Notes under the pieces: generated by a model
Databases searched by the model: none
Seen by the model: only the letters and a program-made list of their open reading frames with translations
Told to the model about the DNA's origin: nothing
From: Azolla caroliniana
Lineage: Eukaryota > Plantae > Polypodiophyta
Reading direction: 5' to 3'
DNA length: 64,000 nucleotides
Assembly: GCA_043228905.1 (NCBI GenBank)
Contig: JBHGNT010000022.1
Span: forward strand, 10,664,001 to 10,728,000
In this document: positions 7,301 through 64,000 of the stretch, in pieces
Position numbering within the stretch: the first letter of the stretch is position 1
How the letters are laid out: each line of letters starts with the position of its first letter
Position numbers and translations under genes: made by a program

Positions 7301-8152
7301 CTTCCCAAGCTGGCCGGCTTCACAAATTTGTGCCTTTCGGCCACTAAATTTGGGCAATCCGAACACTACCTGTTTCGATTGTAGATCTTGAAGCCGCTGG
7401 TGGTTGACGTGGCCTATCCGCTTGTGCCACAAGTCGATGTCCGACTCGGATTTTTGTCCCTTTGCAAACATTGCGGTGCCGCCGTCAGTGGAGTCGAGGA
7501 TGAACATCCTCCCGTCTCTGTGCCCTTGCGCGATCACACGGCCTTCTTCCTCAATGAAGCACCCGAGGTGTGTAAACCGAACATCCATCCCTTGGTCGAC
7601 GATCTGTCCGACCGAGACCAAGTTTTTCGTGATTGTCGGAACGTGCAACACGTTCATGAGTTTCCCTTTCTGCCCAACATGGCTAAGGGGAACTTCTCCG
7701 ACATTCGTGATCGGATGCGGAGTGTCGTCTCCAGTTGCGACTACTCCAGGTTGTATCGGTTTTTCAAGGTACGAGAACCACTCCTTATGGCTCGTCATGT
7801 GGTTTGACGCGCCGGAGTCTACGTACCACACCTCGTTCGATCTCGGGGTGCTCTGTTTTATTGAGTTTGCTTCGTGTCTCGTCACGAAGGCAGACCCTTC
7901 TTCGGCTCTCCTGGAGTCTTCGGCGTAGTGCGGTCGCTGCCTATTTCCCTTGTCGGTATGTCTGGAGCCGTTTCCGGAACCGGTTCTCTCGGAATCGGCG
8001 CGGTTCTTCCAGCACTCACTTTCCCTGTGGCCTTTCTTGCCACAGTACCAGCACTCCGCGATGGCCTTCCCTTGCCGGTTCTCATCGCTTCGACTCCCCC
8101 TGTTTCCGGAGGGTCCGGAGTTGCTGTCGGCATCACTTCGGTGCCTTCTTCC
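4391..8152 (-). pseudogene. Copia-1 gag C-terminus and pol (zinc knuckle, PR, GAG-pre-integrase, INT, RT, RNase H), disrupted
   Basis: Motifs CWYCGKKGHRESEC (about 8030-8056), [74 protein letters not shown]. Premature stops and frameshifts split it into several ORFs. Confidence 0.93.
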
Positions 8153-18780: not shown

Positions 18781-20910
18781 GTTGAGCAACATCTAACAAA
18801 ATTTGCAATCTCTCTCTCCACTTCAAGGTTATTGTCCAAGTATTGCCTTCATTGTTTTTCATGAAACACATTTCAATGCGTTATTATTTTATACAAAACT
18901 ATCACCTAGTAACACATCATGAGTAATATAAAAAAAAATGCCATGATCTCTTATTGTGTTACCTTAGGTACATATGATGATGATATCTTTTAGAGCGTGT
19001 TACGAAACCTACAAAAAAGGGCATCAAAAAATGATATCTGCGATATAAATTCATAAACAAGTATCAACTTGTTGTCAATACAATATCCTACCAACTCCAC
19101 AAGGTTCTTATGATGCACTTGAGACAGAAGAGTGACCTATAGTCCAAATGTTAAAAAAAACAAATTAGCACATGTTCACTAGGAATTCTCCCATCATTGT
19201 TAAGCTTATAGAATTAAGTGTATATGTGCATTTCATTGGTCAATATGGAAGAGAACCGGATATTATCCATTTATGCAACTACCTCATTGAGAAATTCTTC
19301 AACTCGGTGTGATGTACTGGATAAAACTTTAACTGCTACAACCACTCCATTCATCAGAATGCCCTTATATACAATGCCAAAACTACCTTTACCGAGGATC
19401 ATTGTGAAATTGTTTGTCACTATCTTAATGTCTTCAAAACTAAATCTTTGTGCAACCTTTGTAGCTACAGCAAGTACTCTTGTATGGGTAACAACTAGAA
19501 AAGATATGCAAGAAATGTTAGCTCATTTATAAGCATTAGATTAGAATTTCAAATCTTTGATTATTGGAATAGTGTGTGGTGTTTTAGCAATAACATGCAT
19601 TAAAAGATCATATCTAATTATATTTGATTTGGGGAACATGCAAATATGCACTATGACTTCTGAAAACCTCCATACAAATTGAGGTATTGGCCCACCAATG
19701 TAGCATGACATGGTGGTGAAGTTGGGCTAATTTGGTAGTTGAGATGGAGTACTTTCATTCATTGCAAACCGTGATTCATGAGATAAACACAAATTTGTTC
19801 GCATGCTATCAAGATGAGAATCAAAGTATACGTGGCAACAAATTTGGACCTATAAGAATGTTAAAATTGAGAATTGGTAAAGACATTGATATATCTCCAT
19901 TTCAATCATATACATAAAATTTAAATTTAAACTTTTCTAGATCTAGGCTTAAAATGGGTGCGTCATACACATTTTAAGCAAAACATATATATAAATAAAC
20001 TTGAATTAGATTAACTATTGGTGTTTATTGACATACAACTCAAAATATAGTCATTACGATGATCTAGGTAGTCTATCTTAGTTGTATTAGTTGAGTTGTT
20101 GTTTCATGACTCGAGGACTGTTGAGGAGATCATTGCCTCTTCCACACTCAAATGCATGCAACTATGATCACAATAAGCACAACTAAAATACCACACACTA
20201 TTCCAATAATCAAAGGTGTGTTATATTTAGTTGTCGATAAAACTGGTGCAGTGTTGAATCAACAACCATTCATTGCAACGCACAAAAAGTTGTTTCCTTA
20301 GTACCTATGAATGGTGATATTAATGCTCAAATACTTGTTAATCACAAACGATGTTTTCAATAACACGCTATATTTTTCTGACAACACAAATAATGTTATG
20401 TTGTACTCAAATTACACAATTAGGAAAGTCAATTGTTAAACATACTTGAAAACAAGCCCTTCCTTTTGGAGTGCAGTAGGAACCACTCCACTAAAGTTGT
20501 TGTGTGTCAAATCACTAGAAATGAATGAGAATGAGAATGAAACACCATAGGTCAGAATGATACAAAACATTTTGTGATTTAGAGAAACCAAGGATTCTTA
20601 CAAGTATTTTCACTTTGTAAATTTCACAAGTGAAGTAGGAGTTTTCTTTTTTGGGATTGGTCCACTCAATTTGTTATTGCTCAAATTCCTATAAATTGAC
20701 ATGTTTAGGCCAAAAGTATTTATGCATCTCATAGTTAAATATAGGAATACAACAAAATATTTTTGCCAATAATTTTTTATTTTAAGAAATCTTGTGTTGC
20801 TAACACCAACATGAATTAACTAAAAAACATTGTTTAATTAAAGTAAGAATTACAGAAGTTCCATAAGTATTAGTAACTCCCAAAATTGGGGTCTGCCCCT
20901 TGAGGAAAAT
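18781..20910 (-). pseudogene. LRR receptor-like kinase pseudogene fragment (LRR-I-like exon structure)
   Basis: AG/GT-bounded exons: 20602-20688 NLSNNKLSGPIP; 20446-20514 DLTHNNFSGVVP; about 20058-20304 GNNFLC plus TM PLIIGIVCGILVVLIVIIVAC (with stops); 19283-19494 RFSFEDIKIVTNNFTMILGKGSFGIVYKG..VAVKVL..EFLNE; about 19009-19136 [24 protein letters not shown]; 18781-18848 LKWRERLQILLDVAQ. The N-terminus and kinase C-lobe are absent from the window. Confidence 0.9.
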
Positions 20911-21766
20911 AGGTGTGAAAGTGGTTTTAGAATTTAAGCTATTGAAATTAGAAGAATATAAAGTATAGAGCATTCACATTTGGAGGCTAAGAACACGAAC
21001 CAAGACCTTAAGAAGATGTCAAAAGTAAAAGTAAGAGACACAAAGAAAAGTAAAAAGTGAAAAAGCGAGCCACAAAAAACAGTAAAAAAAGGAATGGTAA
21101 AAAAGGAAGGATGAGTGTTACCCATAAGAATATACGAGGAGGCATAAGAGTATATGTAATGATGTGGTTGATGTGTATGTGTAAAGTAAATGAGTGTGTG
21201 AGGATGAGTATGTGTATGGACACATGCACAATTATGTGCATGTTACAAGAATGTGTAATGGTCTTATTTATAACGGTCATGTAACCTTTACATTGTATAT
21301 ATTATATAAACCCCTTATGGGGCATGTAATGGATAACTTTTTCCTCTCTCACATTTTTGTGTCATTTTTTATTTTCACTCTCCTTTTCTCTCTCTATCGT
21401 AACCCCCTTGGGAGGGGAGGTGCTTGACTCGAACCTTCTCGTTCGATCAATACAAGTTGCGATTGAATCATACACCAATCGGCTAGTTCACTGTGGCATG
21501 GGTCGTGAAATTGTGTTGTGCATTTGTGTATTCTTTCTTTTATCATGTGAAGTGAGTTTTATATTATTATTATTATGATGATTATTATTATTATTAATTT
21601 TTTATTCTTTTTACCCTGAAATTTTTAAAATTTTATTTTCAGCCCTTGTGTTTTCGAAATTCTACATTCTGCCCTCCAATTTTTGAAATCTCATGTCATG
21701 CCCTTGAATTTTGGAAATTTCATCTCATACCCTTGAGCTTATAAATTTTCATCTTCTCTGCCTTTA

Positions 21767-24353
21767 CCAAATACAAATATACAGAGAGACTTTACCAAAT
21801 CCCAAACCAACCACCCATTCCAATGCCTTCCACACCCTGGCCTACCATGGGGACACTTTTCACGACCTCTAGGGTCGTGAAGGTCATAAAGAAATTACAA
21901 CATAGGAAGTCCATGGACCACACAGGATTGCGAGTAGAACACATTATATATGCGAGAGAGTGCCTAGCTCCCTTGCTAACTCTAATCTTCAATCGTGCCC
22001 TTGCAGAGGGTTTCCACCACAGTGGACTATGAATACAGTGGCCCCCATACATAAAGGGGGGGACCCCATGGACCCAAATACATATAGGACCATTATGATA
22101 GGCCATACCCTTGCTAAGTTATATGGTGCAGTAATGGAAGCAGAGCTTAGCGACTATATGGAGACCCTAAACCTTCGTGCACCTGAACAAGTTGGCTTTA
22201 GACGAGCCTTCTCCACTATTGATCATATCTTCACACTTAGATGCCTAATTGACCAAACTAAGGCTCGCAAGAAGAAATTATATTGTTGTTTTGTGGACTT
22301 CTGCAAAGCCTTTGACACGGTCCCTAGAGAGCGGTTGTTTGATAGACTTAAAAGCTTGAGGATACCAGATGATATGGTATGGGCCATCTACGCACTATAT
22401 GAACAAGTGTCTGCGTGTGTCCGATGCCCAGGTGGCCTATCTAATCATTTCACTAGCACTATTGGTGTAAAACAAGGTTGCCCCCTATCACCGACGCTTT
22501 TTGGGATCTACATTGATGAGATCACAGATTTTATTGCTCGTGAGGGAGGCACCGGAGTGGTCCTTGGGGATACGCAGGTTCGTATCTTGCTCTATGCAGA
22601 TGACATAGTTTTGCTCTTTGAATCCGAACACGACCTACAAAGGCACCTTAATGCCTTAGATGACTTTTGTGTACAACGAGGATTGGTAGTGAATCTAAGG
22701 AAAACGAAAGTCCTTATCTTCCACACATCGGCCCAAGTTAGAACTAAGTGTCACCTAACTATCTCCCATAGCCCAGTTGAGGTGGTTGGATCATACGTCT
22801 ATCTCGGAGTCACTTTTAGTGCCCGCTCAGGTAAATTTTCGATGACACAGGCAGCGAAGGATAGACTCACGAGAGGACATGCATCCCTCTCACTCCTAGA
22901 GAGACAATGCCACCAAGCACACTTTCAAGAGCCACGGACTAAAGGGTGGCTCTTTGACTCATTAGTGACCCCCTCCCTCATGTATGCATCAACGGTTTGG
23001 GCTCCAGGATTACCATCTTTCATGTGGACGCAATTAGAGAGACCATTGGTGATGATGCTATCACGCCAACTCCGAAGCAAATCGACTGTACCACATGACA
23101 TTATTAGGGCTGAGTTCACATTACCCCCAATGTTAGTAGAGGCACTTTTTCAACTTGTAGTCTTCATTCACAGGATTCATAGCCAACCACATGATAGAAT
23201 ATCTCATCAAGCCTTTAAGGCCTCTCGATCATTGTATGAGTCTGGCTATACTAGCTCATGGTATGGCATGATGGTGAGTTGGCTTTTTGCGAATGGTCTA
23301 GACATTAATAACCTACCTCCCCTTAGGTACAACCACACGAGTGATAACACTTTAATCTCTCATGAGGACCGCAATAAAGTAATACGCCATGAAATATGAC
23401 AAATTTACACTCGGTGTAAATGGATCGCCCCACTAGAGCCACTCCCATCTAAAATGTTGTACTATAAGAAACACCTCATGCACTTCTCTGAGTTAGGTTT
23501 TATCACGCGGCCAAAATATCTAGATGTATTCTTACCACATGCACTAAGGGTTGCCATTGGACAACTTAGAATATCATCTCACCAACTTGAGATTGAGAAT
23601 GGTCGTACTAGTGGAGTCCCTAGGGAGGAAAGGATATGTAGGTTATGTCACATAGAGATAGAGGATGAGTACCACTTTACATGCAAGTGTCCAACCTATG
23701 CCGAGATAAGGGTAAAATACCAAGACATACTTGGTTCGTCTCCCACCCTCCCCAAACTATTAGATACTCTAGATATAAAGAAATTAGACAAATACATTCT
23801 AGAGCTAAAACAACACAGAGAGAATAAGTTACAAAATGTTGACAATAATGTTGCTAATGATCACGAACATGTAACAAATGAAGTTTTTCAGGAACATGAG
23901 GAGACAACGAATGCCGACACACTTGCACCACTCGGCCTTTCCATTGATGAGGCAGAAAACCAGAGAAGAACCAGACGTCCTCGGGTGCCGGGTTTCAAAG
24001 CAACTCGACGTGATGTGGAAGCAATATTGAAAATAAGGGAACGTGAGCTACACCGCCTAGAAGTCATGGCTAGGGCACTCTCTACATTGGAACCCACATC
24101 AAGACCCTTTGACCCCCCACTTCTTTTCGAGAGGCTTGGGTGGAAATAAAATTAGGCTTAGTGTATAGTCACTTTCGAGTATACTACATATTGTACACTA
24201 CTAGAACTCTTTTAGTTTAAGTTCTATTTTTACTTAATTTTATTTTAGTTATGATGACTGGATAAATACTCTTTTGTTGTAAACCAATTGTCTCATGGGC
24301 CAAATTTGGCCTTAGAAGACCTTAATATATCTTTCTTTCTTTCTTTCTTTCTT
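21767..24353 (+). mobile_element. 5'-truncated non-LTR retrotransposon (RTE/RTEX-like) in the left arm
   Basis: RT motifs EQVGFR..VDFCKAFDTV..GVKQGCPLSPTLF..LLYADD..YVYLGV (21960-23399). C-terminal RISSHQLEIENGR..CRLC..EDEYHFTCKC (23454-24149). (CTTT)n 3' tail. TSD TCTGCC(T/C)TTA at 21757-21766 and 24354-24363. The empty site is visible in the right arm near 32790-32810. Confidence 0.9.
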
Positions 24354-24439
24354 TCTGCCCTTATGTTTCTGAAATTTTCTCTTCATGCCCCTCTTCTCTT
24401 TCTTTCTTTGTGCGTTCTTCTCTTCTTCTGCTTCTTCTT

Positions 24440-25009
24440 CGTTTGCCTCTGCTTTACCTCAATCATCCGAATTGATCACACCATGTGGGATCTCAGAGGT
24501 GTTGCTTATGCGAGATTGAAGGAGATCTGAGATCATGCTCATAAGCATGGTCTCTATAATGATCTCTGGAATGAGTAAGCCAATTGTCGCAATACTACCT
24601 TGATTGCATCTGTTATGTCCTTGATGATTCTTCCACGCTTGATCCTCCCTGTTTGAGCTTATTATCAGATCAGTAATTATACTCATGCAGTGGCAGCAAC
24701 GATTGCGGCGGCATCCAATTTCTCAGCAATCTTATCATGGTTGCCAAGATTTATATCCTCTAAAGTAGTATACTGAGAAGAGCTAAAACTCACAATATCT
24801 CGTGATGCAAATTCTGTTATACTAGCGTCTTTCACTTCCTCTTCTTCTTCCATAGCCAGATCTCTATTTAAGAAGCTTACAGGTTGTCTTTGATCATCGT
24901 TTTCTTCTTCTCCAGAGCTCATGAGCTGAGGATTACGAAGCAAGATGTAGCTAATTCTGTTTCTATGCTTTCTAATCATCTCTGTAAACAGCTCGTCCTT
25001 CTGATTCAT
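24440..25009 (-). pseudogene. Unidentified coding-like fragment within the arm (inverted copy at 26374-26560 plus 32371-32700)
   Basis: 108-aa ORF 24683-25009 (..SSGEEENDDQRQ..AMEEEEEVKD..) with protein-like composition. No family recognised. Confidence 0.35.
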
Positions 25010-25144
25010 GATTATATTATCTTGAGATTGTCCTCCCAGATTATCCGCTTTGTTCTCACATGCATTGGTTCTACAACTCCTCCTTCTGATTCATGATTAT
25101 ATTATCTTGAGATTTTCCTCCTAGATTATCCGATTTGTTCTCAC

Positions 25145-25620
25145 ATGCATTGGTTCTAGCAACGAAGAAGAAATCCTTATCTCCATTGGCATCCCGAGAT
25201 GCTGCTATCTTTTGTGCATGCTCCTTTGCTGGAATGACTTGCTTTCCAGGCATATGGTCACATTTCTTGGGCCAGACTTGATCCTCTAGAAAGCAGCCAA
25301 CTGCACCGGTTGCAATCAGATCTTTGACGGTCCTCTCTGTACATTCGGTGCATTACCTCCTCCAGTGTCTTCATGTGTCTGCATCTGCAATGATAGGTAT
25401 CTTGTAAGCAGTCACACAAATGAATCGAGTATTCATTGCCATTTCAGGTGGTTTCAAGAATAGGAAGTCTGATTTTCCCATGAGAGAGGCAGAGAGAGCA
25501 TCCTAACAACCAGGCATCCGAACGACACCACCGTCTTGGATCAGATCCAACACTTTTGTCAGCAACCCCTCCAACAATCCGGCCATGGCCTTGTACCTTC
25601 TGATGGCACTGGAGGACGCC
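25145..25620 (-). pseudogene. Captured fragment of an isocitrate lyase/PEP mutase superfamily gene (2,3-dimethylmalate lyase / carboxyphosphonoenolpyruvate mutase-like)
   Basis: Translation: LIQDGGVVRMPGC*DALSASLMGKSDF..PPEMA..IPIIADADT/GGGNAPNVQ/RTVKDLIATGAVGCFLEDQVWPKKCDHMPGKQVIPAKEHAQKIAASRDANGDKDFFFVARTNA. It contains the family motifs DADTG, xEDQ, KKCGH-like and ARTD-like. It has stops and frameshifts, and no introns. Confidence 0.88.
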
Positions 25621-25910
25621 ATGGTGATCTTCTCCCTATCCTTCTTCTCATCATCATCACGGCCAAAAGTCTGGGCACCTGCTTATGACGATCCTCCATT
25701 CCTCTTCACTTCATCGAGCTCCTGTCGGTGGATCTTCTTGGCCTCGAGGAACTGCTTGAAAAGCTCATTCAGCTCGGCCAGTCTCAAGGGAGGCATCATG
25801 TCGAGGAGGTCCCTGATCTCTCTGATACGGACCTATAGGGCATCGATCTGGTGCTTGAGGAGGCCGATCTGCTGGATGAAACTGAGCTTTTTGTGGCGCT
25901 TCACATGCAG
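25621..25910 (-). pseudogene. Second captured coding fragment (helical/coiled-coil, unidentified), in frame with the lyase fragment
   Basis: GC-rich frame LHVKRHKKLSFIQQIGLLKHQIDAL*VRIREIRDLLDMMPPLRLAELNELFKQFLEAKKIHRQELDEVKR.. Confidence 0.5.
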
Positions 25911-26203
25911 GCAGGGATCAAGGGGGAGGGGGAGGGGGAGGGGCAGGGATCAAGCGAGAACGAAGGAGAAGGAGAAGGAAAGAAGGAAGCTAAAGGAAGG
26001 AGACACAAAAGAAACACTGAAGAAGGCAAGTTCACGAACAAGAGTACAAATGGATCAATTTCTTTCTCTAAGGAAGTACAAGTAGGGAGTTTATGGTTAC
26101 GAGAAAGAGAAAGACATAGACTTCCTCTGAAAGGAGGGTCGGGTCATCCGTTCTGGCGTGCCAAAAGTGTTCTTGGGGTGGGGGTTGAAACCTAGAATGG
26201 CTT

Positions 26204-26372
26204 CACCCCCCTCCCAAGGGGGTTACGATAGAGAGAGAGAAAAGGAGAGTGAAAAATCAGAAATGACACAAAAATGTGAGAGAGGAAAAAGTTATCCATT
26301 ACATGCCCCATAATGGGTTTATATAATACATACAATGTAACGATTACATGACCGTTAAAAGTAAGACCGTTA
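26204..26372 (-). repeat. Third, internal partial copy of the terminal segment
   Basis: Reverse complement of about 21255-21422, including TATTATATAAACCC and a ~35-bp stretch missing from the right terminus. Confidence 0.85.
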
Positions 26373-26560
26373 AAAAGCATAGAAACAGAATTAGCTACGT
26401 CTCGCTTCGTAATCCTCAGCTCATGAGCTCTAGAGAAGAAGAAAACGATGATCAAAGACAACCTGTAAGCTTCTTAAATAGAGATTTGGCTATGGAAGAA
26501 GAAGGGGAAGTGAAAGACGCTAGTATAACAGAATTTGCATCACGAGATATTGTGAGTTTT

Positions 26561-29500
26561 TGTTGTGTAAAGGTGTCCCTCCTTGCGGGGGAGTCGGCCG
26601 AAAAGTCGACTTAAGAGTCGGCTGGTCGAAATCGGCTGAGAAGCCGAAATGTGTCGGATTACCGAAAACAGCCGAAAAGCCGAAAATAGTCAGATTACCG
26701 AATTTGGCCGAAGTCGGTCAAAGAGCAAAAGAATGGTCGGTTTGCCGAAGAACCGAATCTGGGGTCAATTGACCGAATTCGGTGAGAAAGCCGAATTCGT
26801 ACTCAATCAAATGGACACATATACATATACATATGCCTTCTTACATATAAAGTAAAAAAAAGACCTAGTATATATATGCCAACAGGCCTGGCAGTATATA
26901 TGTATGAGGGAAAAAACGAGTTGGATGTATGCGTAACTCTGAGAACGACTGAGTTTTCTACACAATAGTGGTTGTGTAAGAGTATACATACTCAGAAGCT
27001 AAGAGAGGAAAAGAAGAGAGAATCAAAAGAGAAACAGAGAAGCTTGGGAAGCTCAAAAGGAATAGACGTCTATGTGCTAGGGTTTTGGATGCGGTCGGCT
27101 GAAATCGTGTTGTGTAAGAGTATACATACTCAGAAGCTAAGAGAGAAGAAAAGAAGAGAGAATCAAAAGAGAAACAGAGAGTGAAAGACAAAGAAGCTTG
27201 GGAAGCTCAAAAGGAATAGACGTCTATGTGCTAGGGTTTGGATGCGGTCGGCTGAAATCGTGGTTTTAGCACACTCCCATACCAAATCAGGTTTTATTGT
27301 TCTGATTGTATTCCGTAATTGCTCATAGTGAAATTTCCTATTCCCGTGGTTTTTCCCTGAAATCAGGGTTTTCCACGTAAATCATGTGTTCTTCATTTTC
27401 TGTTTAGGTCTAAGTTCGATTTCTGATTTTTGTTTGAGTGAAATTCTATCAAACTGGTATCAGAGCCTAGGTTCTAGATGGAAGGGGGTGTGAGTGGCTT
27501 TCCAGGTATGATTGTCTTGAACTCACAAAATTATTCAGATTGGAAGATCAAAATGGAAGATCTCCTAATAGTAAAAGACTTGTATGAGCCTATAGAAAAT
27601 AAGGATATACCAAAGGGGGTAATAGAGTCGGAGTGGAGAATTCTAAATAGGAAGGCAGTGGCGATTATGAGACAATGTGTAGACATTAGTGTTCTACAAC
27701 ATGTAGCGAGTGACACCAATGCCTTCGAACTATGGCATAAACTTTCTGACCTCTATGAAAGGAAAAATGCCTTAAATAAGACCTTCTTGATGAGGAAGAT
27801 AGTGAGACTGAAGTACATAGATGGGGAGAGCATTGTAGAGCATATCAGTGTGTTTATGGGACTACTGAATCAGTTAGCCTCATCAAAGTTCCCATTAGAT
27901 GACTGTATGTAGGCCACACTATTGTTATGTACTCTCCCGGATAGTTGGGAAAACTTAATAGTAACACTCAGCACTTCATGTAAAGAAGACAACTTATCCT
28001 TACAAGTAGTAAAGACGAGTATTTTAAATGAAGAGACAAGAAGAAAAGACAAAAATGTCTTGTCTCAGTCGGAAGCTAATGTGACCCAAGAATTTAGCCG
28101 AGGTAGAAGAGAGCATAGAAGCCCAGAAAATGGAGATAGGTTTTATGGAAGGTCAAAGTCTAGAGGAAGACCTACATGCTTTTATTGTGGGAAGCCTGGT
28201 CACTTCCAAAAGAATTGTTGACATCTTAGAAAGGACAAAGGCATGGCTGATGAGGTCGAACCCAGAAAAATTTCTGATGATAAAAATACCTCAGCCATTG
28301 CAACTAGTGAGGAAGAGATGCTATTCATCTGTGAACAAGATAGCGTGAATCTTGTAAATGATGAGTGCTCATGGGTAGTGGATTCCGGTGCATCTTTTCA
28401 CCTAACTCCCAAAAGAGAATGTTTTTCATCTTACACAACCGGTGACTACGGCCATGTAAGGATGGGAAATGACGGTGAATGCAAGATTGTGGGCATAGGA
28501 ACTGTGTGTTTGCTAACATCTACTGGTTGCAGGATGATATTGAAGGATGTACGCCATGTTCCGGATGTCAGATTGAATCTGATATCGGCTGGACGGCTAG
28601 ATGATGACGGGTACAGTGGTGGCTTCCAAAATGGTACATGGAAGTTCTGTAAGGGGAACCTGATTGTGGCTCGAGCCCAAAAACAGAACACATTGTATGT
28701 AATGTATGCGAAGTTGTGTCGAGAGGAAGCAAATGTAGTGGCTGGCTTAGATGGTGAGTTATGGCATAAAAGGCTCGGACACATGAGTGAAAGGGGAATG
28801 TATATCCTTGCGGAAAAGGATTTCCTACCAGAGGTGAAAGGAATACATTTGGAAAAGTGTGTGGATTGCTTGGCTGGGAAGAAAAATAGAACAGCCTTTC
28901 ACTCTAGGACTCCAATGAGGAGAGAACATGCCTTAGAGCTGGTTCACACCGATGTATGTTATATTGATGCCCCATCTCATCGTGGAGGACAATACTTTGT
29001 CACATTTATTGATGACTTCAGTAGAAAGGTGTGGGCTTATGTGTTGGTGTCTAAAGACCAAGTGTTGTCGGTCTTTAAAGAGTTTCATGCTAGGGCAGAA
29101 AGAGAGTCCGGACAGAAGCTGAAGGCTGTCTGGACAGATAACGGTGGCGAATATAGAGGCCAATTTGAGATGTATTGCAAGACTCAAGGCATCAAACTTG
29201 AGTATACGGTGCCGAAGACACCTGAGCTAAATGGTCTAGCAGAAAGAATGAATCGAACCATAATGGAAAGGGTAAGAAGCATGTTGGCACATGCAAAATT
29301 GCCAAAGTCATATTGGGCTGAAGGAATGTTGACAGTTGTTTACCTTATTAACAAGTCTCCATCAGTGCCTCTAATAGGGGATGTACCACAAAGAGTGTGG
29401 ACAGGAAGAAGTGTATCTTATCAGCACTTAAAGGTGTTTGGATGCTTGGCCTATGTACATGTTGCTAAAGATCAGAGGTCAAAGATGGACAGTAAATCCA

Positions 29501-32365
29501 AACCTTGTATATTCTTGGGGTACTCGGAAGAAGAGTTCGGGTACAGAATGTGGGATCTCCTTGATAAGAAAGTGATAAGAAGTCGAGATGTCATATTAAT
29601 GGAAGACAAGACAATCGAGGACTAGAAGCAACAAAGACCAGAGTCGTCTCCCAAATCGACTACTGTTATGGAGTCAATACTAGTCGATCCCACTCCCACA
29701 CAACAATCAGCTAACGAAGTTGAATTTGAGTCGGTCGACACCCAACATCAGATTGATACACACGAATCGGAGTCGGAAGATGAGTTGTTGGAAGAAAATG
29801 ACCATGAGCCAATTATTGAAGGAAGAAGATATCCACGAAGACAAAGGAAGGTCTCCTCTAGATATCCAGCCAGTCAATATGTCCTCTTGACTGATGAAGG
29901 GGAACCAGAATGCTATGAAGAGGCCATGACTGATATACAAAAGGAGAAATGGTATAATGCCATGCAAGAAGAAATGGATTCCTTGCATGAGAATCTAACT
30001 TATGAGCTGATGGAGCTGCCTGATGGTAAGAAGGCACTTAGAAACAAATGGGTCTACAAATTAAAGACTGGTGAAGATGGCAGTACACCCAGGTATAAGG
30101 CCCGGATTGTCGTAAAGGGTTTTCAACAGAAAAGGGGTGTTGACTTTGATGAGATTTTTGCCCCAGTTGTGAAGATGACCTCTATTCGGAATGTTTTGAG
30201 TATGGCCACCAGTATGAATCTTGAAATCGAACAACTGGATGTTAAAACAGCTTTCTTGCATGGTGAGTTGGAAGAAGAAATCTATATGAAATAGCCAGAG
30301 GGTTTTGAGGTAAAAGGAAAAGAAAATCTTGTCTGTAGGTTGAAGAAAAGCTTGTATGGTCTAAAGCAAGCTCCACGACAATGGTATAAGAAATTTGAGT
30401 CCTTTATGTTGGTACATGGATTCCACAAAACACAAGCCGATCATTGTGTATTTGTGAAAAGATATGATGAGAGTGACTTTCTTATTCTGTTGTTGTATGT
30501 AGATGATATGTTGGTTGTTGGACAGGATGTCAAAAAGATTGCAAGCTTGAAGAAAGCATTGAGCAAATCGTTTGCCATGAAAGATTGAGGACCGGCAAAA
30601 CAGATTTTGGGAATGCATATAGTCCGGGACAGGACTGAAAACATGTTATGGCTGTCACAAGAGAAATATGTGACAAAAGTTTTGCAAAGGTTTAATATGT
30701 ACAATGCAAAATCGGTCGGATCGCCATTGCCAGTGGACTGTAAGTTAAATTCAGGACAATGTCCGAAAACGGAGAAAGATAAGGCAGAGATGAGGAGAGT
30801 GCCATATGCTTCTGCTATTGGCAGCCTTATGTATGCTATGGTTTGCACAAGGCCGGACATTGCATTCGCTGTTGGAACCGTTAGTCGTTCCATGAGTAAT
30901 CCTGGGAAGGAGCATTGGACAGCCGTAAAATGGATTCTCAGATACCTCAAAGGAACTTCGAGTGTATGTCTTAGATATGGCTCCGGGAAACCTGTGCTAG
31001 AAGGCTTTACAGATTCTGATATGTCGGGTGATGTAGATTCTAGCCGATCCACATCAGGGTATGTGATGATGTATTCAGGGGGAGCTGTGTCATGGCAATC
31101 AAGATTGCAAAAGGTTGTGGCTTTGTCAACCACCGAGGCTGAGTATATGGTTGCAGTGGAAGCCGGAAAAGAATTGATTTGGATGAGAGAGTTCTTGAGC
31201 GAACTAGGATTGAAGCAAGACAAGTACTTACTTCATTGTGACAATCAAAGTGCTATCCATCTGGCTAAGAATGCTACCTACCACTCTCGTACAAAGCACA
31301 TTCAAAGAAGGTACCATTGGTTAAGAGAAAGAGTGGAAGAAAATGAGTTTGTTCTAGCTAAGATCCCCACTGAAGAAAATGGATCAGACATGCTCACAAA
31401 AATTCTGTCTATGGAAAAACTCGTTGCATGCCGGAATAAGATTGGCTTGGTTGGTCCTCCCCCTACAGGAGTGAAGGGGGAGTTTGTTGTGTAAAGGTGT
31501 CCCTCCTTGCGGGGGAGTCGGCCGAAAAGTCGACTGGTCGAAATCGGCCGAGAAGCCGAAATGTGTCGGATTACCGAAAACAGCTGAAAAGCCGAAAATA
31601 GTCAGATTACCGAATTTGGCCGAAGTCGGTCAGAGAGCAAAAGAATGGTCGGTTTGCCAAAGAACCGAATCAGGGGTCAATTGACCGAATTCGGTGAGAA
31701 AGCCGAATTCGTACTCAATCAAATGGACACATATACATATACATATGCCTTCTTACATATAAAGTAAAAAAATGACCTAGTATATATATGCCAACAGGCC
31801 TAGCAATATATATGTATGAGGGAAAAAATGAGTTGGATGTATGTGTAACTCTGAGAACGATTGAGTTTTCTACACAGTAGTGGCTGTGTAAGAGTACACG
31901 TACTCAGAAGCTAAGAGAGAAGAAAAGAAGAGAGAATCAAAAGAGAAACAAAGAGTGAAACACAGAGAAGCTTGGGAAGCTCAAAAGGAATAGACGTCTA
32001 TGTGCTAGGGTTTTGGATGCGGTCGGCTGAAATCGTGTTATGTAAGAGTATACATACTCAGAAGCTAAGAGAGAAGAAAAGAAGAGAGAATCAAAAGAGA
32101 AACAGAGAGTGAAAGACAGAGAAGCTTGGGAAGCTCAAAAGGAATAGACATCTATGTGCTAGGGTTTGGATGCGGTTGGCTGAAATCGTGGTTTCAGCAC
32201 ACTCCCATACCAAATCTGATTGTATTCCGTAATTGCTCATTGTGAAATTTACTATTCCCGTGGTTTTTCCCTGAAATCAGGGTTTTCCACGTAAATCGTG
32301 TGTTCTTCATTTTCTGTTTGGATCTAAGTTCGATTTCTGATTTTTTTCTGAGTGAAACTCTATCA
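26561..32365 (+). mobile_element. Full-length Ty1/Copia element (Copia-2, Tork/Tnt1-like) in the right arm
   Basis: LTRs 26561-27451 and 31485-32365 (TG...CA). TSD GTTTT at 26556-26560 and 32366-32370. PBS TGGTATCAGAGC at 27455-27466. PPT GTGAAGGGGGAG at 31471-31482. Each LTR carries a ~140-bp internal tandem duplication. Confidence 0.97.
27478..31494 (+). pseudogene. Copia-2 gag-pol polyprotein: one frame, five premature stops
   Basis: Six ORFs, all in the same frame. Motifs CFYCGKPGHFQKNC, WVVDSGASFH, VHTDVC, NGLAERMNRT, LYVDDML, FTDSDM, RTKHIQRRYH. Confidence 0.95.
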
Positions 32366-33758
32366 GTTTTAGCTATTCTCAGTATACTACTTTAGAGGAT
32401 ATAAATCTTGGCAACCATGATAAGATTGCTAAGAAATTGGATGCCGCCGCAATCGACGCTGCCACCGCATGAGTATAATTACTGATCTGATAATAAGCTC
32501 AAACAGGGAGGATCAAGCGTGGAAGAATCATCAAGGACATAACAGATGCAATCAAGGTAGTATTGCGACAATTGGCTTACTCATTCCAGAGATCATTATA
32601 GAGACCATGCTTATGAGCATGATCTCAGATCTCCTTCAATCTCGCATAAGCAACACATCTGAGATCCCACATGGTGTGATCAATTTGGATGATTGAGGTA
32701 AAGCAAAGGCAAACAAAGAAGAAGCAGAATGAGAGAAGAACGCACAAAGAAAGAAAGAGAAGAGGGGCATGAAGAGAAAATTTCAGAAACATAAGGGCAG
32801 AGAAGATGAAATTTTATAAGCTCAAGGGTATGAGATGAAATTTCAAAACTTCAAGGGCATGACATGAGATTTCAAAAATTGGAGGGCAGAATGTAGAATT
32901 TCGAAAGCAAAAGGGCCGAAAATAAAATTTCAAAAAATTTTAGGGTAAAAATTTTAAAGACCAAAGGGTAAAAAAATAAAAAAAAATAAAAAAAATAAAA
33001 AACTCACTTCACATGATAAAAGAAAGAATACACAAATGCACAACACGATTTCACGACCCATGCCATAGTGAACTAGCCGATTGGTGTATGATCCAATCAC
33101 GACTTGTGTTGACCGAACGAGAAGGTTCGAGTCAAGCACCTCCCCTCCCAAGGGGGTTACGATAGAGAGAGAGAAAAGGAGAGTGAAAATAAAAAATGAC
33201 ACAAAAATGTGAAAGGGGTTTATATAATACATACAATGTAATGGTTACATGACCGTTATAAATAAGACCGTTACACATTCTTGTACACATGCACATAATT
33301 GTGCATGTGTCCATACACATACTCATCCTCACACACTCATTTACTATACACATACACGTCAACCATATCATCACATACCCTTATACTTCCCCGTATATTC
33401 TTACAGGTAACAATGAGGGAGATATGACGATTAGAAGGTCATTATGTCTTAATTAAAAATAGGAGATAAAAAGCTTGTAAAAATAACATGAACGAGGGAG
33501 GAGAAGAAGATTATAAGAAGTGAGATGAAGGAGGTTAAGGCGGGGTGAAGTGATACATTTGTAATAAGGAAAGGGTCTTGAGAGAGGAGAGGTCTTAGTA
33601 GTGGGAAGAAAGAGATTAAGGTAGAATTGTCAAAAAAACTTGTAGGTTTGAGTGATTGGAAGTAAGTTCTTTGGTTTTTTAGTTCAATTTGGAGTTTATC
33701 CCCTTTGTATTGATTTTATAGTGGAATATTATAACATTCTATCTCTTTCTCATCTTCT

Positions 33759-40090: not shown

Positions 40091-43000
40091 ATTCTTAGTG
40101 AGCTGTATGCTGAGGATTGCTCATGAATCGGCACACCACTCTGACTGCATATCCAATATCCGGCCAGGTGCACACCATTGCATACATCAAGCTCCCGATG
40201 GTTGAAGCATATGGTATCTTCATCATATCTGTCTTCTCCGCCTTTGTTCTTGGAATTTGTCTTCCGGATAGCTTGTAGTGTGCCGGAAGTGTCGATCCGA
40301 CCGGTTTCGCATCCGACATGTTGAACCGCTGAAGCACCTTCGTCACATACTTTTTCTGTGACAGCCACATCAGCATCTTCAACCGGTCCTGGATGATATG
40401 CATCCTCAATATCTGTCTTGCCGGACCCAAGTCTTTCATCGAGAAGGTTCAGTTCAGAGCCTTCTTCAACATCCGTATCTTGACTTGATCTCGTCCGATG
40501 ATTAGCATGTCCTCCACGTACAGGAGTTGTATCAAGAAGTCTCCTTCGTCAAATTTCTTCACGAACACGCAATGATCGGCTTGCGTTTTGTGGTACCCTT
40601 GATCGGTCATGAAGGAGTCAAACTTCCGGTACCATTGCCGGGGGGAGCTTGCTTCAGTCCATATAAGCTCTTCTTCAGCCGGCACGCCAGGTGCTCCTTC
40701 CCTTTCTTCTCAAATCCTTCTGGTTTTTGCATGTAGATCTCCTCTTCGAGGTCACCATGGAGGAACGCCGTCTTGACGTCTAGTTGCTCTACCTCGAGGT
40801 CCATGCTTGCCACTATGCTCAACACCGTCCGGATGGAAGTCATCTTAACTACCGGGGCAAAGATCTCATCGAAGTCCAGTCCTTTCTTCTGCTGGAAACA
40901 CTTCACCATGATCCGGGCCTTATACCTTGGTGGATTCCCGGTGTCTCCCAGTTTCAGCTTGTACACCCACTTGTTCCGGAGTGCTCTCTTCCCTTTCGGC
41001 AACTTCGTCAGTTCATATGTGTGGTTCTCATGCAAGGAATCCATCTCATCTTGCATGGCACTCAACCACTTGCGGTTGTGGGTGTCTCTGTTTGCTTCTT
41101 CCAACCTTCCTGGCTCCCCCTCATCGGTTAGCAACACATGCTCTTCATCCCGGAATCTCCGGGGGGCTCTAATCTCTCGGAGAGGATATTTCCATCCTTG
41201 GTTTCTGACTACCGGTTCCTCCATTTGTTCCGAATCCGAATCCGATTCGGGATCTTGTCTGGTTCCTATGTCTGGTTCTTCTTCTTCTTCTTCTTCTTCG
41301 GTCGGTTCATTTTCTTGTCCGTAACTGGCCGGTTCGTCGAGTGTCATCCGGTTACCGGCTAACATCCGGTTTTCATTCGGGTATATCCTTTTGTCCTCAA
41401 GCCGGTTCTCATTGGATGATCTGGAGTTCATCACCTTCTTCTCCGACTCCCAGTCGGCAATGGTCTTGTCTTCCATGAAGACTATGCCCCGACTCCGGAA
41501 CACCTTCTTGTCGACCAAATCTCACACCCGGTAACCAAACTCATCATCACCGTATCCAAGGAATATGCATGGCCGGGACTTCAGATCCAGCTTTATTCTC
41601 TTTTCCTTTGCCACATGCATGTAAGTGAGACATCTGAACACCTTCAGATGCCGCTAAGACACATCCTTACCAGTTCATACTCTCTGCGGTGAGTCTCCGG
41701 CCAAGGGTACTGAGGGTGATCTGTTTATCACATAGGTCGTCGTCGTCAACACCTCAGCCCAAAACGTCTTGGGTAACTTGGCATGTGCTAGCATGCTTCA
41801 GACTCTCTCCATTATGGTTCGGTTCATCCTTTCAGCCAGCCCGTTCAATTCCGACGTCTTTGGCATGGTAAATTCGAGCCGGATTCCCTTCGATCGGCAG
41901 TACTCCTTGAATTGCCCCCGGTATTCTCCTCCGTTGTCAGCTCGAACCGCCTTCAGCTTCCGACTAGTTTCTCTTTCCACTTTCACGTGGAGCTCCTTGA
42001 AGACGGATAACATTTGATCCTTCGTCTTCAACGGTGAGACCCACAACTTCTGGTTGTGGTCATCTATGAACGTCACGAAGTACTGCGATCCGGCATGTGA
42101 CTTTGTGTCCACTTCACACACATCTGTATGCACCAGCTCCAGTGGTGCATTCCGTCTTATCAGTGGTCTTGACAGGAAGGAGGTTCAGTTTTGCTTGCCG
42201 ACCAAGCAATCGGTGCACTTCTCAAGTTGCACGTCCTTCACCGAAATGAGGTTGTCTTCGGCAAGCCTTTTCATCCCCTTCTCACTCATGTGACACAGTC
42301 TTTTGTGCCACAGCTCACCAGTAGTGTTGGATGCTACGTTCACTTCATCCCAGCATATTTGGGCATGGATAAGATATAGCGTGTTGACATTCCGGCCTCG
42401 AGCCACTATTAGGCTCCCTTTGCTGAACTTCATAACTCTGTTCTGGATGTTGCCTGTATAGCCCTCATCATCTAGCCGACCGGTTAATATCAAGTTCAGT
42501 CAAACCTCCGGAACGTGTCGAACTCCTTCAGTAACAATTTGCATCCGGTTGATGTCGTCAACGACACATCTCCTATGCCGACAATTCGGCATGTACTTTC
42601 ATTCCCCATAAGAACACAACCATGATCACCAGCTGTGTAGGACGAGAAGCATTTCCAATCCGGTGTCAAGTGGAACGACGCTCCGGAATCGACAACCCAT
42701 GTTGTCTTGTCGCCGACAAGGTTTAACTCATTCTCTTCAGTAATGAGCATCAGTTCTTCTTCACTTGTCGTGATTGCCGATGTTCACTTCAGATCCAGGC
42801 CTCTCCGGTTCGAACTGTTTCGATCCGGACTCTTCTTCAAATCGGTAGTGCCGGTTTCTTTCTCCTTCCGGAAATGTCGGCAGTTCTTCTGGAAGCGTCC
42901 CAGCTTCCCGCAATAGAAGCATGTGGGCCTCCCCCTTGACTTCGACCTCGTCCTTGATTTGTCCCGGTTTTGGGGATTCCGATACCGACCTCTTCCCTAG

Positions 43001-44275
43001 TTGTGGTTATCTTCCGTGACCAAGGCCTTCAGATCAGTTCCGGACTCCCGGTCCTTCCGGCGAGCTTCTTCATCTAGCAAGCTTGATTTTACTCTTGCTA
43101 GGGACAATTGTTTTCCTTTTGGCCCGGCGTTGCCCAATGTGACAACTAATGTCTCCTAGCTATCAGGGAGGGAACTGAGCAGGAGCAATGTGAGTACCTC
43201 ATCGGCAAGAGGTACTTCCAACGAGGTTGCTTGATGTATCAGTCCCTGGAAGGCATTCATGTGACAACTAATGTCTCCCAGCTATCAGGGAGGGAACCAA
43301 GTAGGACCAATGTGAATACCTCATCGGAGAGAGGTACTTCCAATGAGGTTTCTTGATGTATCAGCCCCTGGAAGGCATTCATGTGCTCCGCCATATTGGA
43401 GCCGTCCTGGTACCGGAGCCTCACTAGCTTCCGGAATACCCAAACCCGATTAACAACATTCTTGTTCTTGAACATGATTCCAATCTTCTCCTAGAGTTCA
43501 TGAGCCTTGCTCTCTTCATTGAAGTTGTTGTACAGGATTATGTCAATGAAGCACCGAATGTATGCCATTGTCTTCATGTGCATCACCTCCCACACTGTGG
43601 CATCGATCTTGTCCGGTCTCTTGTCCCCGAACTGAACCGACAACCAAAGATCTTTAACCACCAGCATATCCCTCATCTTCGACTTCCACATTGAGTAGTT
43701 GGAGCCGGTGAGCTTGAGTGCCGCCGAACGATTCTTCCATTTCTTGTGTTGTTCGCTTTGATACTAGTTTCTGGAGAATCGCGGAATATTGCTCAGCCAC
43801 AACCGAGTCTTGAATCACAGAAAATGACATAGGGATGGGAATAGAAGTACACATACAAAAGGGAGTACACAGGATGTTTACGTGGAAAACCCTGAATGGG
43901 AAAGACCACGGGAGCCCACAAACTCCAACTATCACTATGAAGAAAAGAGAGTACAATTGGAGACTTGGAGGCAACGACCTCAAGCTCTGTTTCTTTGCCA
44001 ACCGACGGTTACAATAGAGTATTTCTCTGTATCTCACACACACTCTCTCTCTCTGTCACTCTCTATACAACAGCTCTTACAACAATATAACAACACACAC
44101 GCTAAAGTGATTGCCCTAAGTCATATTTATACTTATATGAACTTAGGGATATTTACAAATATAGCCTCAATGGGCTTACTCAAGAAATATTTACAAACCT
44201 ATCTTCTCTTCCGGTTCTCACTGGGTCCACTTCATTCTCAACCGGATCCCATCCGGAGGGACCGATTTCCCAACA
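40091..44275 (-). mobile_element. Degenerate Copia (Copia-4): Tork/Tnt1-like gag-pol with a 5' LTR resembling that of Copia-1
   Basis: Protein fragments closely parallel Copia-2 (WVVDSGASFHLTP, GELWHKRL, ELNGLAERMNRTIMERV, LLTDEGEP). Decayed iMet PBS at 43755-43766. LTR about 43770-44275. A ~122-bp tandem duplication in gag at about 43139-43382. Confidence 0.88.
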
Positions 44276-46197: not shown

Positions 46198-47349
46198 ATG
46201 GCCACTGTTAGCGCTGAAGAATATCAATCTGTTTTCTTGGAATTTCACTGCTTGAAGGAGAAGTTCCATGCTTTGGAACAAGAAAACCAACGGTTGCTGG
46301 GGGATCTTCAACAAATCTCCTTAGAAAAGCAGCAAACGCAACAACAACATGGGGAACTTGCGTTACGTGTGCAACAACTCGAAGCAACCATCGTAGCGAT
46401 GCAACAACAAGGGCCCGGAACACAAGGGATTCATAGAGAACCCAAGATTGGCCTTCCCACGAAGTTTGATGGAACGCAATCGCAGTTTAGAGGGTTCCTT
46501 AACCAGTTATGATTAATTATTCAAATGCATCCTTCCCGATATCCCACCGATGCATCACGAGTGGGTTTAGTAGGCACTTTGTTAAGTGGCTCAGTGTTGT
46601 CATGGTTCGCTCCACTATTAGAAAAGGAATCTCCATTACTCCACAATTTTGAAGAGTTTCTAGGTGAGTTTAAAGCATGTTTCGGAGATATTGATAGCAT
46701 CAGGACCGCAATCAACAAAATCCAGCGATTACGCCAAGGTGACTGTCCAGCCTCCGCATATGCTACAGATTTTCGCCTACTCGCTGCCGATATCCCTTGG
46801 GATGACCAAGCGTTGATGGAGCAATTCCGTTATGGTTTACGCAACGACGTCAAGGATTTACTATTGACCTTCCCCGAAGAGCCAAAGTCCTTAACAGAAG
46901 CAATCAGTCGCGCGGTGAGATGTGACAACCACCTCTTTGAGCGACGTTCGGAACGACAGCTACAGATGCCGAGGGCAAGATTAGAGCCCACCTATGCCTC
47001 AGTGGTAGCAAGACCTTTTCCGAGGGAGTCATATAATGCGCCTCCAGCGAATACTCCGACTTCAATGGAGATTGACACTACACGTCGTCGAGGGCCATTA
47101 TCCGAAGAAGAAAAGCAGCGACGCCGTACAAATCGACTATGTCTTTACTACGGTGGACTAGGACATATCGCAATAAATTGCTCCCATAGGCCAAGAAGAC
47201 AGGTAAACCAAATAATCGCTAGTTCTAATTGTACTAAATCCGAGCTTATTTTAGTAGGGATATCTGATAGTCCTAATAGTACTAATATCCCAGATCTAGC
47301 AAACAAATTTGATGTCCTTAGTCAGTTAGAAGAAGAGTTAAACGACTAA
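46198..47349 (+). pseudogene. Chromovirus gag (one premature stop)
   Basis: Coiled-coil N-terminus, PTKFDG..FRGFLNQL, LRQG..ASAY..F, FRYGL, MEID, and a decayed knuckle CLYYGGLGHIAINC. Confidence 0.9.
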
Positions 47350-61418: not shown

Positions 61419-61505
61419 GTCCGTTCATACCTCGATTTTTAATGATTTCTTTTTCTTTTCTTTTTTTCTTTTCTTTTTTTCTCTTTTTAATGACGGTATG
61501 TGATC

Positions 61506-63997: not shown

Positions 63998-64000
63998 CCC

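Follow-up and report, generated by a model that had tools for sequence, protein, structure and literature searches.

The insertion at 21116-33412 of the window (the whole 64-kb stretch of DNA that was analysed) is a dead-on-arrival, non-autonomous Ty3/Gypsy-type LTR retrotransposon with captured mRNA fragments, a rare by-product of an ordinary LTR family and not a new kind of transposon. Its anatomy, its family context, its intron-free cargo and both of its unusual junctions were observed directly. Our best reading, to which we give a probability of about 0.7, is that an aberrant cDNA was integrated via two U3 ends, and that the inverted arms behind these ends were formed either by snap-back before integration or by templated repair at a later time.

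Structure of the insertion

The footprint of the insertion and the parts of the unit that is left when two nested retroelements are removed are as follows.

21111-21115, target site duplication (TSD) ATGAG, left copy
33413-33417, TSD ATGAG, right copy
21116-21762 plus 24360-24975, left arm of the reduced unit, 1263 bp
24976-26369, spacer, 1394 bp
26370-26560 plus 32371-33412, right arm, 1233 bp
21763-24353, plus strand, nested LINE, 5′-truncated, with a (TTTC)n tail (RVT_1, E=1.7e-33)
26561-32365, plus strand, nested Copia, with LTRs at 26561-27451 and 31485-32365 (891 and 881 bp)

At the left junction ATGAG is followed by TGTTACC (from 21116), and at the right junction GGTAACA (to 33412) is followed by ATGAG. 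The inverted repeat ends precisely at 21116 and 33412, and the direct 5-bp repeat starts there; given the base composition of the flanks, a 5-bp match would occur by chance with a probability of 0.0037. The LINE is flanked by the TSD TCTGCC (21757-21762 and 24354-24359), and its empty site, TTCTCTGCCCTTATG, is present in the right arm. The Copia element, which has a PBS (TGGTATCAGAGC), a PPT and gag-pre-integrase and rve domains, is flanked by the TSD GTTTT (26556-26560 and 32366-32370), with the empty site in the left arm. Without these two elements the unit is 3.9 kb long. A sequence-only reading of this DNA had proposed the 5-bp TSD, a 3.9-kb unit with inverted arms of about 1.26 and 1.23 kb, and a nested LINE and a nested Copia, each flanked by a TSD and with the corresponding empty site in the other arm, all of which the junction sequences and coordinates bear out. 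As it had also claimed, host-gene cargo is present (an intron-free PEP-mutase fragment), and no gag, RT or transposase ORF was found in the unit. Its statement that the unit has no recognisable PBS was not quite right: a PBS-like site and a partial LTR lie in the spacer (26150-26372).

No copy of the flanks and no empty site of the insertion was found elsewhere in the 64-kb window, and a protein search with the left-flank ORF gave no match. Loose contig ends at 21088 were considered as an empty-site form, but diverged sequence continuing the left flank would explain them equally well, and they were not used.

Age of the arms

Substitutions separate the two arms at 4.1% of positions (45/1090) and the two Copia LTRs at 3.3% (28/861); the nesting order is therefore consistent. 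Ten of the 45 arm substitutions fall in the outermost 69 bp (p=1.7e-4), and the true excess of divergence is limited to this segment. Such clustering is not predicted by a simple model in which the arms were identical at birth, and it counts against our best reading. A contrast in BLAST identity between the outer and inner parts of the arms (86% versus 97%) was examined as a sign of two sources and rejected, being mostly due to indels and a microsatellite.

Palindromic chimeras are a known long-read artefact, and one such read could have been taken into the assembly; in one read-contig comparison, no contig bridging the junctions was listed. An artefact would however give identical arms, whereas these differ by the 45 substitutions and by several indels, and a separate retroelement with a TSD is nested in each of them, the empty site being kept in the other arm. 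In addition, the segment 25988-26202, adjoining the internal LTR piece described below, is matched exactly by a contig from run X1. Because the arms have diverged by 4.1% and contain different nested insertions, we conclude that they are old and real, and an assembly or sequencing artefact is hardly credible.

Both tips are the U3 start of a Gypsy-type LTR

In each arm, the outermost 307 bp are the U3-side part of a high-copy Gypsy-type LTR of ~345 bp. Three pieces of this LTR are present.

21116-21422, plus strand, left-arm LTR, positions 1-307, with the U3 start TGTTACC facing outward; 92.6% identity to the LTR of outside contig L002
33142-33412, minus strand, right-arm LTR, positions 307 to 1, with a 32-bp deletion; U3 start facing outward, GGTAACA on the plus strand
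26168-26372, minus strand, internal piece A″, LTR positions 141-345, with a TATA-like box and the U5 end ...AAGAACA

The left-arm piece is without the final ~37 bp of the LTR. The two outer pieces are ~95% alike and bounded by the single TSD, with the extra piece A″, which carries additional private changes, between them. They are mutually inverted, and direct orientation is found only between A″ and the right arm.

The start of the LTR is defined by independent copies in outside contigs (L001/L002, L006, L007, L010 and L012), and both tips of the insertion fall exactly at position 1 as set by these copies. In L001, L002, L010 and L012 the start is preceded by ...GCCATG (...GCCATG/TGTTAyCC), while the flank in L007 differs. 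L006 holds a solo LTR flanked by a 5-bp TSD, CCTGG/TGTTATCC...CTACAACA/CCTGG, in which the LTR ends ...ACAACA. The contexts of the LTR in outside contigs are ordinary, comprising the solo LTR, internal region-146 bp-LTR-flank (in L012/13 the order is internal-M-146-LTR-flank, M being the 3′-terminal internal region of the family) and LTR-PBS-leader. An autonomous Gypsy element within the window (58390-64000) has the junction ...CCATG/TGTTACC after an RT-RNaseH-integrase ORF and a 989-aa ORF, and the 3′ internal end of the family, ...GGCGTGCCATG/TGTTACC, is ~86% identical to it over 47 nt. An evident PPT is lacking immediately before the family LTR, and the outside contigs, being of <=6.3 kb, did not yield a full-length canonical element with a direct LTR pair.

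Captured mRNA fragments lie in a normal element order

Between the outer LTR pieces the following features were distinguished.

26150-26167, minus strand, PBS-like site TGGCACGCCAGAAC, 4 nt beyond the LTR end
about 26141-26149, minus strand, leader common to L002 and L007
24976-26149, minus-strand sense, cargo and leader, including a G-rich tract
about 25546-25950, minus strand, coiled-coil-like fragment within the cargo
25146-25532, minus strand, intron-free PEP-mutase/isocitrate-lyase-family fragment (PEP_mutase, E=1.3e-10)
24988-25163, 85-bp tandem duplication in the cargo
24360-24975, minus strand, left arm, purine-rich end of M and low-copy region B, contiguous with the cargo
21423-21762, left arm, region M, element sense on the minus strand
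26370-26560, plus strand, right arm, inner part of B, an inverted duplicate with 97% identity to 24785-24975
32371-33141, right arm, rest of B and M, sense on the plus strand

From 26372 to 21423 on the minus strand, the order is LTR(141-345)-PBS-leader-cargo-B-M, which is the normal one. A conserved PBS-like site, TGGCRCG..., lies 4 nt after ...ACAACA in L002, L007 and L010, and likewise beyond the end of A″ (26150-26163). Region M contains an (ATT)n tract and tandem repeats of 29 bp (TRF), and in L002, L010 and L012/13 it precedes the LTR by 146 bp and has the same orientation. A tRNA or SINE origin was considered for the end of M with GGTTCGAGTC and rejected, ARAGORN giving no match and Rfam only a chance miRNA match. 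In outside contigs L009 and L014, cargo, B and M run uninterrupted across the point equivalent to 24975/24976, with no fold-back.

In tblastn, the PEP-mutase fragment matched a plant PEP-mutase homologue over aa 35-179 as one contiguous block. The gene of that homologue is interrupted by three introns within this span, after about aa 81, 105 and 133. As the fragment is intron-free, the cargo was captured through RNA. Read depth was ~26-37 thousand for the LTR (hundreds of times the unique-sequence depth), 8-13 thousand for M, 126-646 for B and ~100 for the cargo, with unique contigs at ~25-50; the pattern is one of high-copy, ordinary LTR ends around a low-copy interior.

Two novel junctions

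Only two junctions in the unit are novel.

21421-21424, J1, left copy, sense LTR position 307 joined to the antisense 3′ end of M, with microhomology TG
33141/33142, J1, right copy, the same joint in the right arm
26370-26372, J2, joint between LTR position 141 and the inner end of inverted B, with microhomology TAA

The canonical LTR contains a 13-bp hairpin (dG -21.5 kcal/mol, z -5.3), and J1, which is the same on the left and on the right, lies in the 5′ arm of this hairpin. J1 was not found in three independent M-bearing and ~9 LTR-bearing outside contigs, and the J1 terminus does not occur in the rest of the window. The J1 pattern had no match in a genome-contig set, and the J1 and LTR patterns had none in a viral-contig set; these negatives are uninformative, the canonical LTR motif being absent from the viral contigs too. 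J2 is missing from L009 and L014, where B continues into the cargo. Look-ups of exact ORFs spanning J1, J2 and the left tip gave no match.

The sequence-only reading had offered two alternatives, a fold-back cDNA carrying the same LTR end twice, and a non-autonomous Pack-type element mobilised by an integrase-like DDE enzyme. The second would make the insertion a DNA transposon with 1.25-kb TIRs, moved by a Ginger-like DDE transposase or by a retrotransposon integrase in cut-and-paste mode. TG...CA termini, a 5-bp TSD, long inverted termini and internal gene fragments all accord with this; among Ginger-type elements 5-bp TSDs are found only in TDD-4 and TDD-5 of Dictyostelium, and gene fragments are carried by GingerRoot (PMC2836005, PMC6839031). 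However, the reduced unit has no transposase ORF, the rve matches in the window belonging to the Copia and Gypsy elements; the terminal 307 bp are those of an ordinary LTR, elsewhere found in direct, retroelement-type contexts; and the chimeric terminus created by J1 is in none of the ~12 outside contigs. The intron-free cargo implies RNA capture, the interior retains a PBS-like site and a leader, and B and the cargo are low-copy. Neither TSD length nor taxon range fits, since Ginger TIRs are of 40-270 bp with TSDs of 4 bp in Ginger1 and most Ginger2, and GingerRoot has 6-bp TSDs and among plants occurs in bryophytes and lycophytes only, being absent from seed plants (PMC2836005, PMC6839031). 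We consider a Pack-type origin improbable. The fold-back alternative fared better, agreeing with the U3-start termini of a Gypsy-type LTR, the intron-free cargo and the normal order of the interior. The structure goes beyond a simple fold-back, however, as two non-homologous junctions are needed, and part of it may postdate integration.

Origin of the insertion

In our best reading, the parent element would have had the order 5′LTR-PBS-leader-captured mRNA fragments-B-M-146 bp-3′LTR. During reverse transcription, a plus-sense LTR strand, started at the normal U3 start, may have stalled 37 nt short of the LTR end, within the strong LTR hairpin, and switched via the 2-nt microhomology onto a plus-sense template at the end of M, yielding a chimeric end composed of LTR 1-307 and antisense M. 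This end would then have come to lie at both tips, each backed by 1.25 kb of inverted sequence, by one of two routes. By route (a), the nascent strand would snap back at J2, using the 3-nt microhomology, and copy its own 5′ part before integration; we assume second-strand synthesis of the snap-back strand, as required for an integrase substrate. By route (b), integration would come first and involve a simpler element in which a short LTR was inverted; a later break in the 5′ LTR of this element would be repaired by copying from the inverted end and end-joining at J2. Either route would present the U3 terminus ...GGTAACA-3′ at both ends of the integrating molecule, from which integrase would generate the usual 5-bp duplication. 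Afterwards, as the nesting shows, the LINE and the Copia inserted into the arms. Autointegration was rejected, as neither J1 nor J2 involves an LTR terminus.

Alternatively, inversions, duplications and deletions, produced by replication template switching, could later have reshaped an ordinary chromosomal insertion with direct LTRs, ATGAG being either the original TSD or a coincidence. The TG and TAA microhomologies are also typical of chromosomal repair, and the uneven divergence of the arms and the private changes in A″ suggest more than one event over time. On this account, however, the left tip is expected to be the U5 end (TGTTGT...), whereas U3 position 1 is observed, and remodelling must remove both the U5 end and the 146-bp segment before abutting an inverted LTR position 1 exactly on the TSD. 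Both tips match the family terminus to the base. Furthermore, the flanks form a direct and not an inverted repeat, the palindrome stopping short of host DNA. We consider chromosomal remodelling unlikely.

If integration occurred via two U3 ends, the insertion is a natural example which suggests that molecules with two U3 ends can be inserted by a plant retrotransposon integrase with a normal 5-bp duplication. Such an example is relevant to how stringently integrase selects its DNA ends in vivo. Strand-switching errors could in one or two steps make kilobase-long inverted termini with TG...CA ends from an LTR element. Such copies defeat annotation and dating based on LTR pairs, and can be mistaken for new TIR superfamilies. 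A single copy alone is a curiosity. We think it very improbable that insertions whose two tips are the same LTR end form a recurrent class, re-recognised by Gypsy integrase and moved as DNA, and the present data contain no sign that this insertion was re-mobilised as DNA; if recurrent and re-mobilised, TIR-like copies of this kind would be a living intermediate on the route that has been proposed from LTR retrotransposons to Ginger-type DNA transposons.

Comparison with known systems

In its Gypsy-type LTR with TG...CA ends, 5-bp TSD, PBS-like site and lack of gag-pol, the insertion resembles LARD-type elements, as it does in having intron-free host mRNA fragments fused to unrelated sequence and a cargo-bearing interior that is present in several copies (L009, L014). 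Maize Bs1 is the classic non-autonomous LTR retrotransposon with retro-captured gene fragments. Unlike LARD-type elements, the insertion has no direct LTR pair, the U3 start being at both tips with 1.25 kb inverted behind each.

Snap-back (self-primed) synthesis by reverse transcriptase is known from aberrant retroviral cDNAs, and 5′ inversion of L1 arises by twin priming. Our best reading shares with these the use of microhomology for strand switches during cDNA synthesis, leading to inverted segments in one insertion; L1 inserts by target-primed reverse transcription and not by integrase. In the literature searched we found no description of a snap-back LTR-element cDNA integrated via two U3 ends, and no published precedent for U3-U3 integration in vivo or for inverted-LTR insertions with a TSD.

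Complex LTR-retrotransposon insertions produced by abnormal template switching have the structure LTR-internal-LTR-internal-LTR, all direct, with one TSD (Sabot & Schulman 2007, PMC1950507). The present insertion is similar in its single integration with a single 5-bp TSD, its highly similar outer LTRs, its extra internal LTR, and its identical ends, usable by one integrase; in both cases, only reverse-transcription errors explain the structure. It differs in that the arms are inverted and the switches change strand, and inverted forms are unmentioned in the text of that paper.

Pack-MULEs and other Pack-type TIR elements likewise have inverted termini around host gene fragments. Their TSD length and termini differ, and they copy genomic DNA, whereas the fragment here is spliced, crossing three intron positions uninterrupted. 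With Ginger1, Ginger2/TDD and GingerRoot the insertion shares TG...CA (TGTNR) termini as in Gypsy LTRs, inverted termini and a short TSD, and with GingerRoot also internal gene fragments. Unlike these elements, it has no integrase-like transposase, and it combines a 5-bp TSD with 1.25-kb arms, RNA-derived cargo and a terminus that is not common to other copies in the outside contigs and the rest of the window. Bao et al. (PMC2836005) speculated that Ginger TIRs derive from two LTRs in opposite orientation, and the structure described here is of the kind that they invoked.

Structure of the unit

The unit at 21111-33417 is bounded by the direct repeat ATGAG, which abuts TGTTACC on the left (21111-21115) and follows GGTAACA, ending at 33412, on the right (33413-33417), as the sequence-only reading had it. 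The inverted repeat ends exactly at the tips and the direct 5-bp repeat starts there; with the A/G-rich composition of the flanks taken into account, the probability of a 5-bp match arising by chance is 0.0037. Both nested insertions described in that reading were recovered: a 5′-truncated LINE with RVT_1 (21763-24353, TSD TCTGCC), whose empty site lies in the right arm, and a Copia element (26561-32365, TSD GTTTT), whose empty site lies in the left arm. The Copia has LTRs of 891 and 881 bp, the PBS TGGTATCAGAGC, and gag-pre-integrase and rve domains. Once both insertions are removed, the left arm measures 1263 bp, the spacer 1394 bp and the right arm 1233 bp, in agreement with the reduced unit proposed earlier.

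BLAST identity between the arms is 86% in the outer part and 97% in the inner part, a gap owed mainly to indels and a microsatellite. The arms differ by 45 substitutions in 1090 positions (4.1%) and the LTRs of the nested Copia by 28 in 861 (3.3%); insertion of the Copia after arm formation is therefore possible. Ten of the 45 arm substitutions, mostly transitions, fall in the outermost 69 bp (21116-21184 and 33344-33412; p=1.7e-4), and none in the next 74 bp inward. An origin of the inverted arms in the assembly is contradicted by their divergence and by the separate nested insertion in each; the unit is thus not an assembly palindrome.

Just left of the unit, short ORFs with the leucine-rich-repeat motifs LSNNKLSGPIPK and DLTHNNFSGVVP (20436-20732, minus strand) probably represent exons, or remnants, of a gene for an LRR receptor-like protein. 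Directly adjoining the unit, 300 bp (20800-21115) are high-copy or low-complexity sequence, with a depth of 9-26 thousand. Other elements in the window are:

46525-50933, plus strand: chromodomain-bearing Gypsy (gag, RT-RNaseH, integrase-chromo)
40151-42585, minus strand: Copia-type pol region
5699-7885, minus strand: Copia-type pol region

Of the two Copia-type pol regions, one is 72% similar to the nested Copia.

The termini belong to a Gypsy-type LTR family

A 24-nt motif kept in all three LTR copies of the window retrieved eight plant contigs from metagenome assemblies, and protein-cluster look-ups gave six further loci (L009, L010, L012-L014 and the homologue gene locus L011). The outermost 300 bp of the arm are very high copy: their summed contig depth was 26-37 thousand, unique contigs standing at about 25-50. 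Depth was 8-13 thousand for the next 340 bp (M, the 3′-terminal internal region of the family), 126-646 for B, the low-copy internal region between cargo and M, and about 100 for the cargo.

Alignment of the repeat-bearing contigs gave a family LTR of ~345 bp, running from TGTTAyCC to CCCCACCCC(A/T)ACAACA. One contig, L006, is a solo LTR with CCTGG on either side, an ordinary 5-bp TSD. Its downstream flank, CCTGGACCTCATTTTC..., is shared with an LTR in L001 that has internal sequence upstream (L006 compared with L001 and L004). L001 appears to carry the 3′ LTR of a full-length form at the L006 site, and in different samples this one insertion seems to exist as a solo LTR and at full length. 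Four nucleotides past the ...ACAACA end there is a conserved PBS-like TGGCRCG..., followed by a common leader (L002, L007 and L010). Upstream of TGTTACC in L002, L010 and L012/13 lies a 146-bp segment ending ...GGCGTGCCATG, preceded by M in the same sense as the LTR. As L012 and L013 are one locus, this order was seen in three independent copies. In L012/13 the U5 end runs into unrelated flank, which makes it a true 3′ end.

The first 150 bp of L002, which lie a few hundred bp upstream of M, belong to the 3′ end of a Copia-type LTR, with a CCGTGGTTTTTCCC...GGGTTTTCCACGT motif also present in the nested Copia and at 43863-43911. A Copia thus lies upstream of M in the window as in L002, which may be coincidence or an insertion preference.

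The junction ...CCATG/TGTTACC was also found downstream of the ORFs of an autonomous element in the window:

58390-64000, minus strand: autonomous Ty3/Gypsy element, truncated by the window end
62084-63997, minus strand: its RT-RNaseH-integrase ORF
58449-61418, minus strand: its 989-aa ORF, with no Pfam match

After the 989-aa ORF, ...GGGCGTGCCATG is followed directly by TGTTACCGG, the start of the 3′ LTR. The autonomous partner of the studied family may come from the same lineage as this element. Since TGTTACC follows M and the 146-bp segment in the contigs and the ORFs in this Gypsy, it is the U3 start of a Gypsy-type LTR. Both tips of the unit are such U3 starts.

The mutase fragment was probably captured in spliced form

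The unit contains no transposase, as first described, but the statement that it lacks a recognisable PBS is not fully accurate, since the spacer holds:

26168-26372, minus strand: third LTR piece, positions 141-345
26150-26163, minus strand: PBS-like site following the third LTR piece

The leader after this site is common to L002 and L007. It is followed on the same (minus) strand by cargo made up of three fragments: one coiled-coil-like and of unassigned origin, one of the PEP-mutase/isocitrate-lyase family (E=1.3e-10 to Pfam PEP_mutase), and a third that passes uninterrupted into the left arm's region B. A single alignment block places the mutase fragment on residues 35-179 of a plant homologue, in whose gene introns follow residues ~81, ~105 and ~133. 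The fragment therefore seems to have been captured from spliced RNA, with intron positions taken from another plant's homologue and not from the true parent gene. Capture from spliced RNA is the way of retroelements.

At two outside loci, L009 and L014, this chimeric cargo likewise leads into B and M; with 92-97% identity to the window, they have neither the 85-bp tandem duplication nor the fold-back. The minus strand from 26372 to 21423 thus reads as a normal element, complete except for the initial 140 bp of its 5′ LTR and a proper 3′ end. The tandem duplication, at 24988-25163 in the window cargo, is absent from both loci; 365 bp inside the coiled-coil-like fragment of L009 (region 388-752) are missing from the window copy; and the window copy and L009 alike have lost ~20 mutase codons between two ALSA motifs.

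Two abnormal junctions

The two arms have an identical junction J1, at 21422/21423 and 33141/33142. Here LTR position 307, in sense, meets the 3′ end of M, in antisense; the two sides have TG in common, and the 146-bp segment and the final ~37 bp of the LTR are skipped. In the canonical LTR, the position of J1 is eight bases inside the 5′ arm of a perfect 13-bp hairpin (dG -21.5 kcal/mol, z -5.3), a plausible pause site. At J2 (26370-26372), LTR position 141 is joined to the inner end of the inverted B copy, with TAA shared. J1 was not found in any outside contig covering either of its sides. A low-depth contig (run X1) joins 21319 (sense LTR) to 26195 (antisense LTR) with 10 other letters between, and may reflect either an alignment effect or a further inverted LTR-LTR junction at some other place in the genome.

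The footprint, inverted termini and gene cargo had suggested a Pack-type element or a fold-back cDNA. A DNA transposon of Ginger-like or Pack type is contradicted by the ordinary retroelement settings in which the LTR occurs elsewhere, the spliced cargo, the PBS-like site inside the unit, the lack of a transposase there, the fact that none of the outside contigs obtained contains J1, and the disagreement with what has been published on the TSDs and TIRs of Ginger1, Ginger2 and GingerRoot.

Proposed origin

We favour integration through two U3 ends, with a probability of roughly 70%. Plus-strand strong-stop DNA begins exactly at LTR position 1, which explains why both tips match the family terminus to the base. 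We infer that this strand stalled in the hairpin and switched to a plus-sense template at the end of M, producing J1. Two routes from there both require integration through two U3 ends. In a one-step route, the J1 strand would be extended as minus strand through the element, with R/U3 transfer, and would snap back at J2, copying its own 5′ part to the end and so placing U3 at both tips; second-strand synthesis and insertion by integrase would follow. In a two-step route, a simpler element with a normal 5′ LTR, an inverted LTR (307-1) at its 3′ end and two U3 ends would have integrated first. A later break in the 5′ LTR would have invaded the inverted LTR at the opposite end, and repair would have copied J1, M and B before end-joining at J2.

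The internal LTR piece has ~7 private changes and the arms three and one. Together with the clustered tip substitutions these lean towards the two-step route, the counts being small. As both arms have private changes at the tip, the tip substitutions may equally stem from gene conversion or a local hot spot. Chromosomal remodelling of an ordinary insertion is unlikely, as it would need to bring LTR position 1, inverted, into exact contact with the TSD where the U5 end is expected. It keeps some probability mainly because neither an empty site nor an intermediate form was seen.

Comparison with known insertions

No description of inverted-LTR insertions with a TSD was found in the full-text literature searched, whose incomplete coverage means that novelty is not thereby proven. 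The nearest published analogue found is the 'complex' template-switch insertion of Sabot and Schulman (PMC1950507), which, like the unit, has a single TSD, outer LTRs that resemble each other and one additional LTR inside. All parts of that insertion are in direct orientation, whereas the arms of the unit are inverted.
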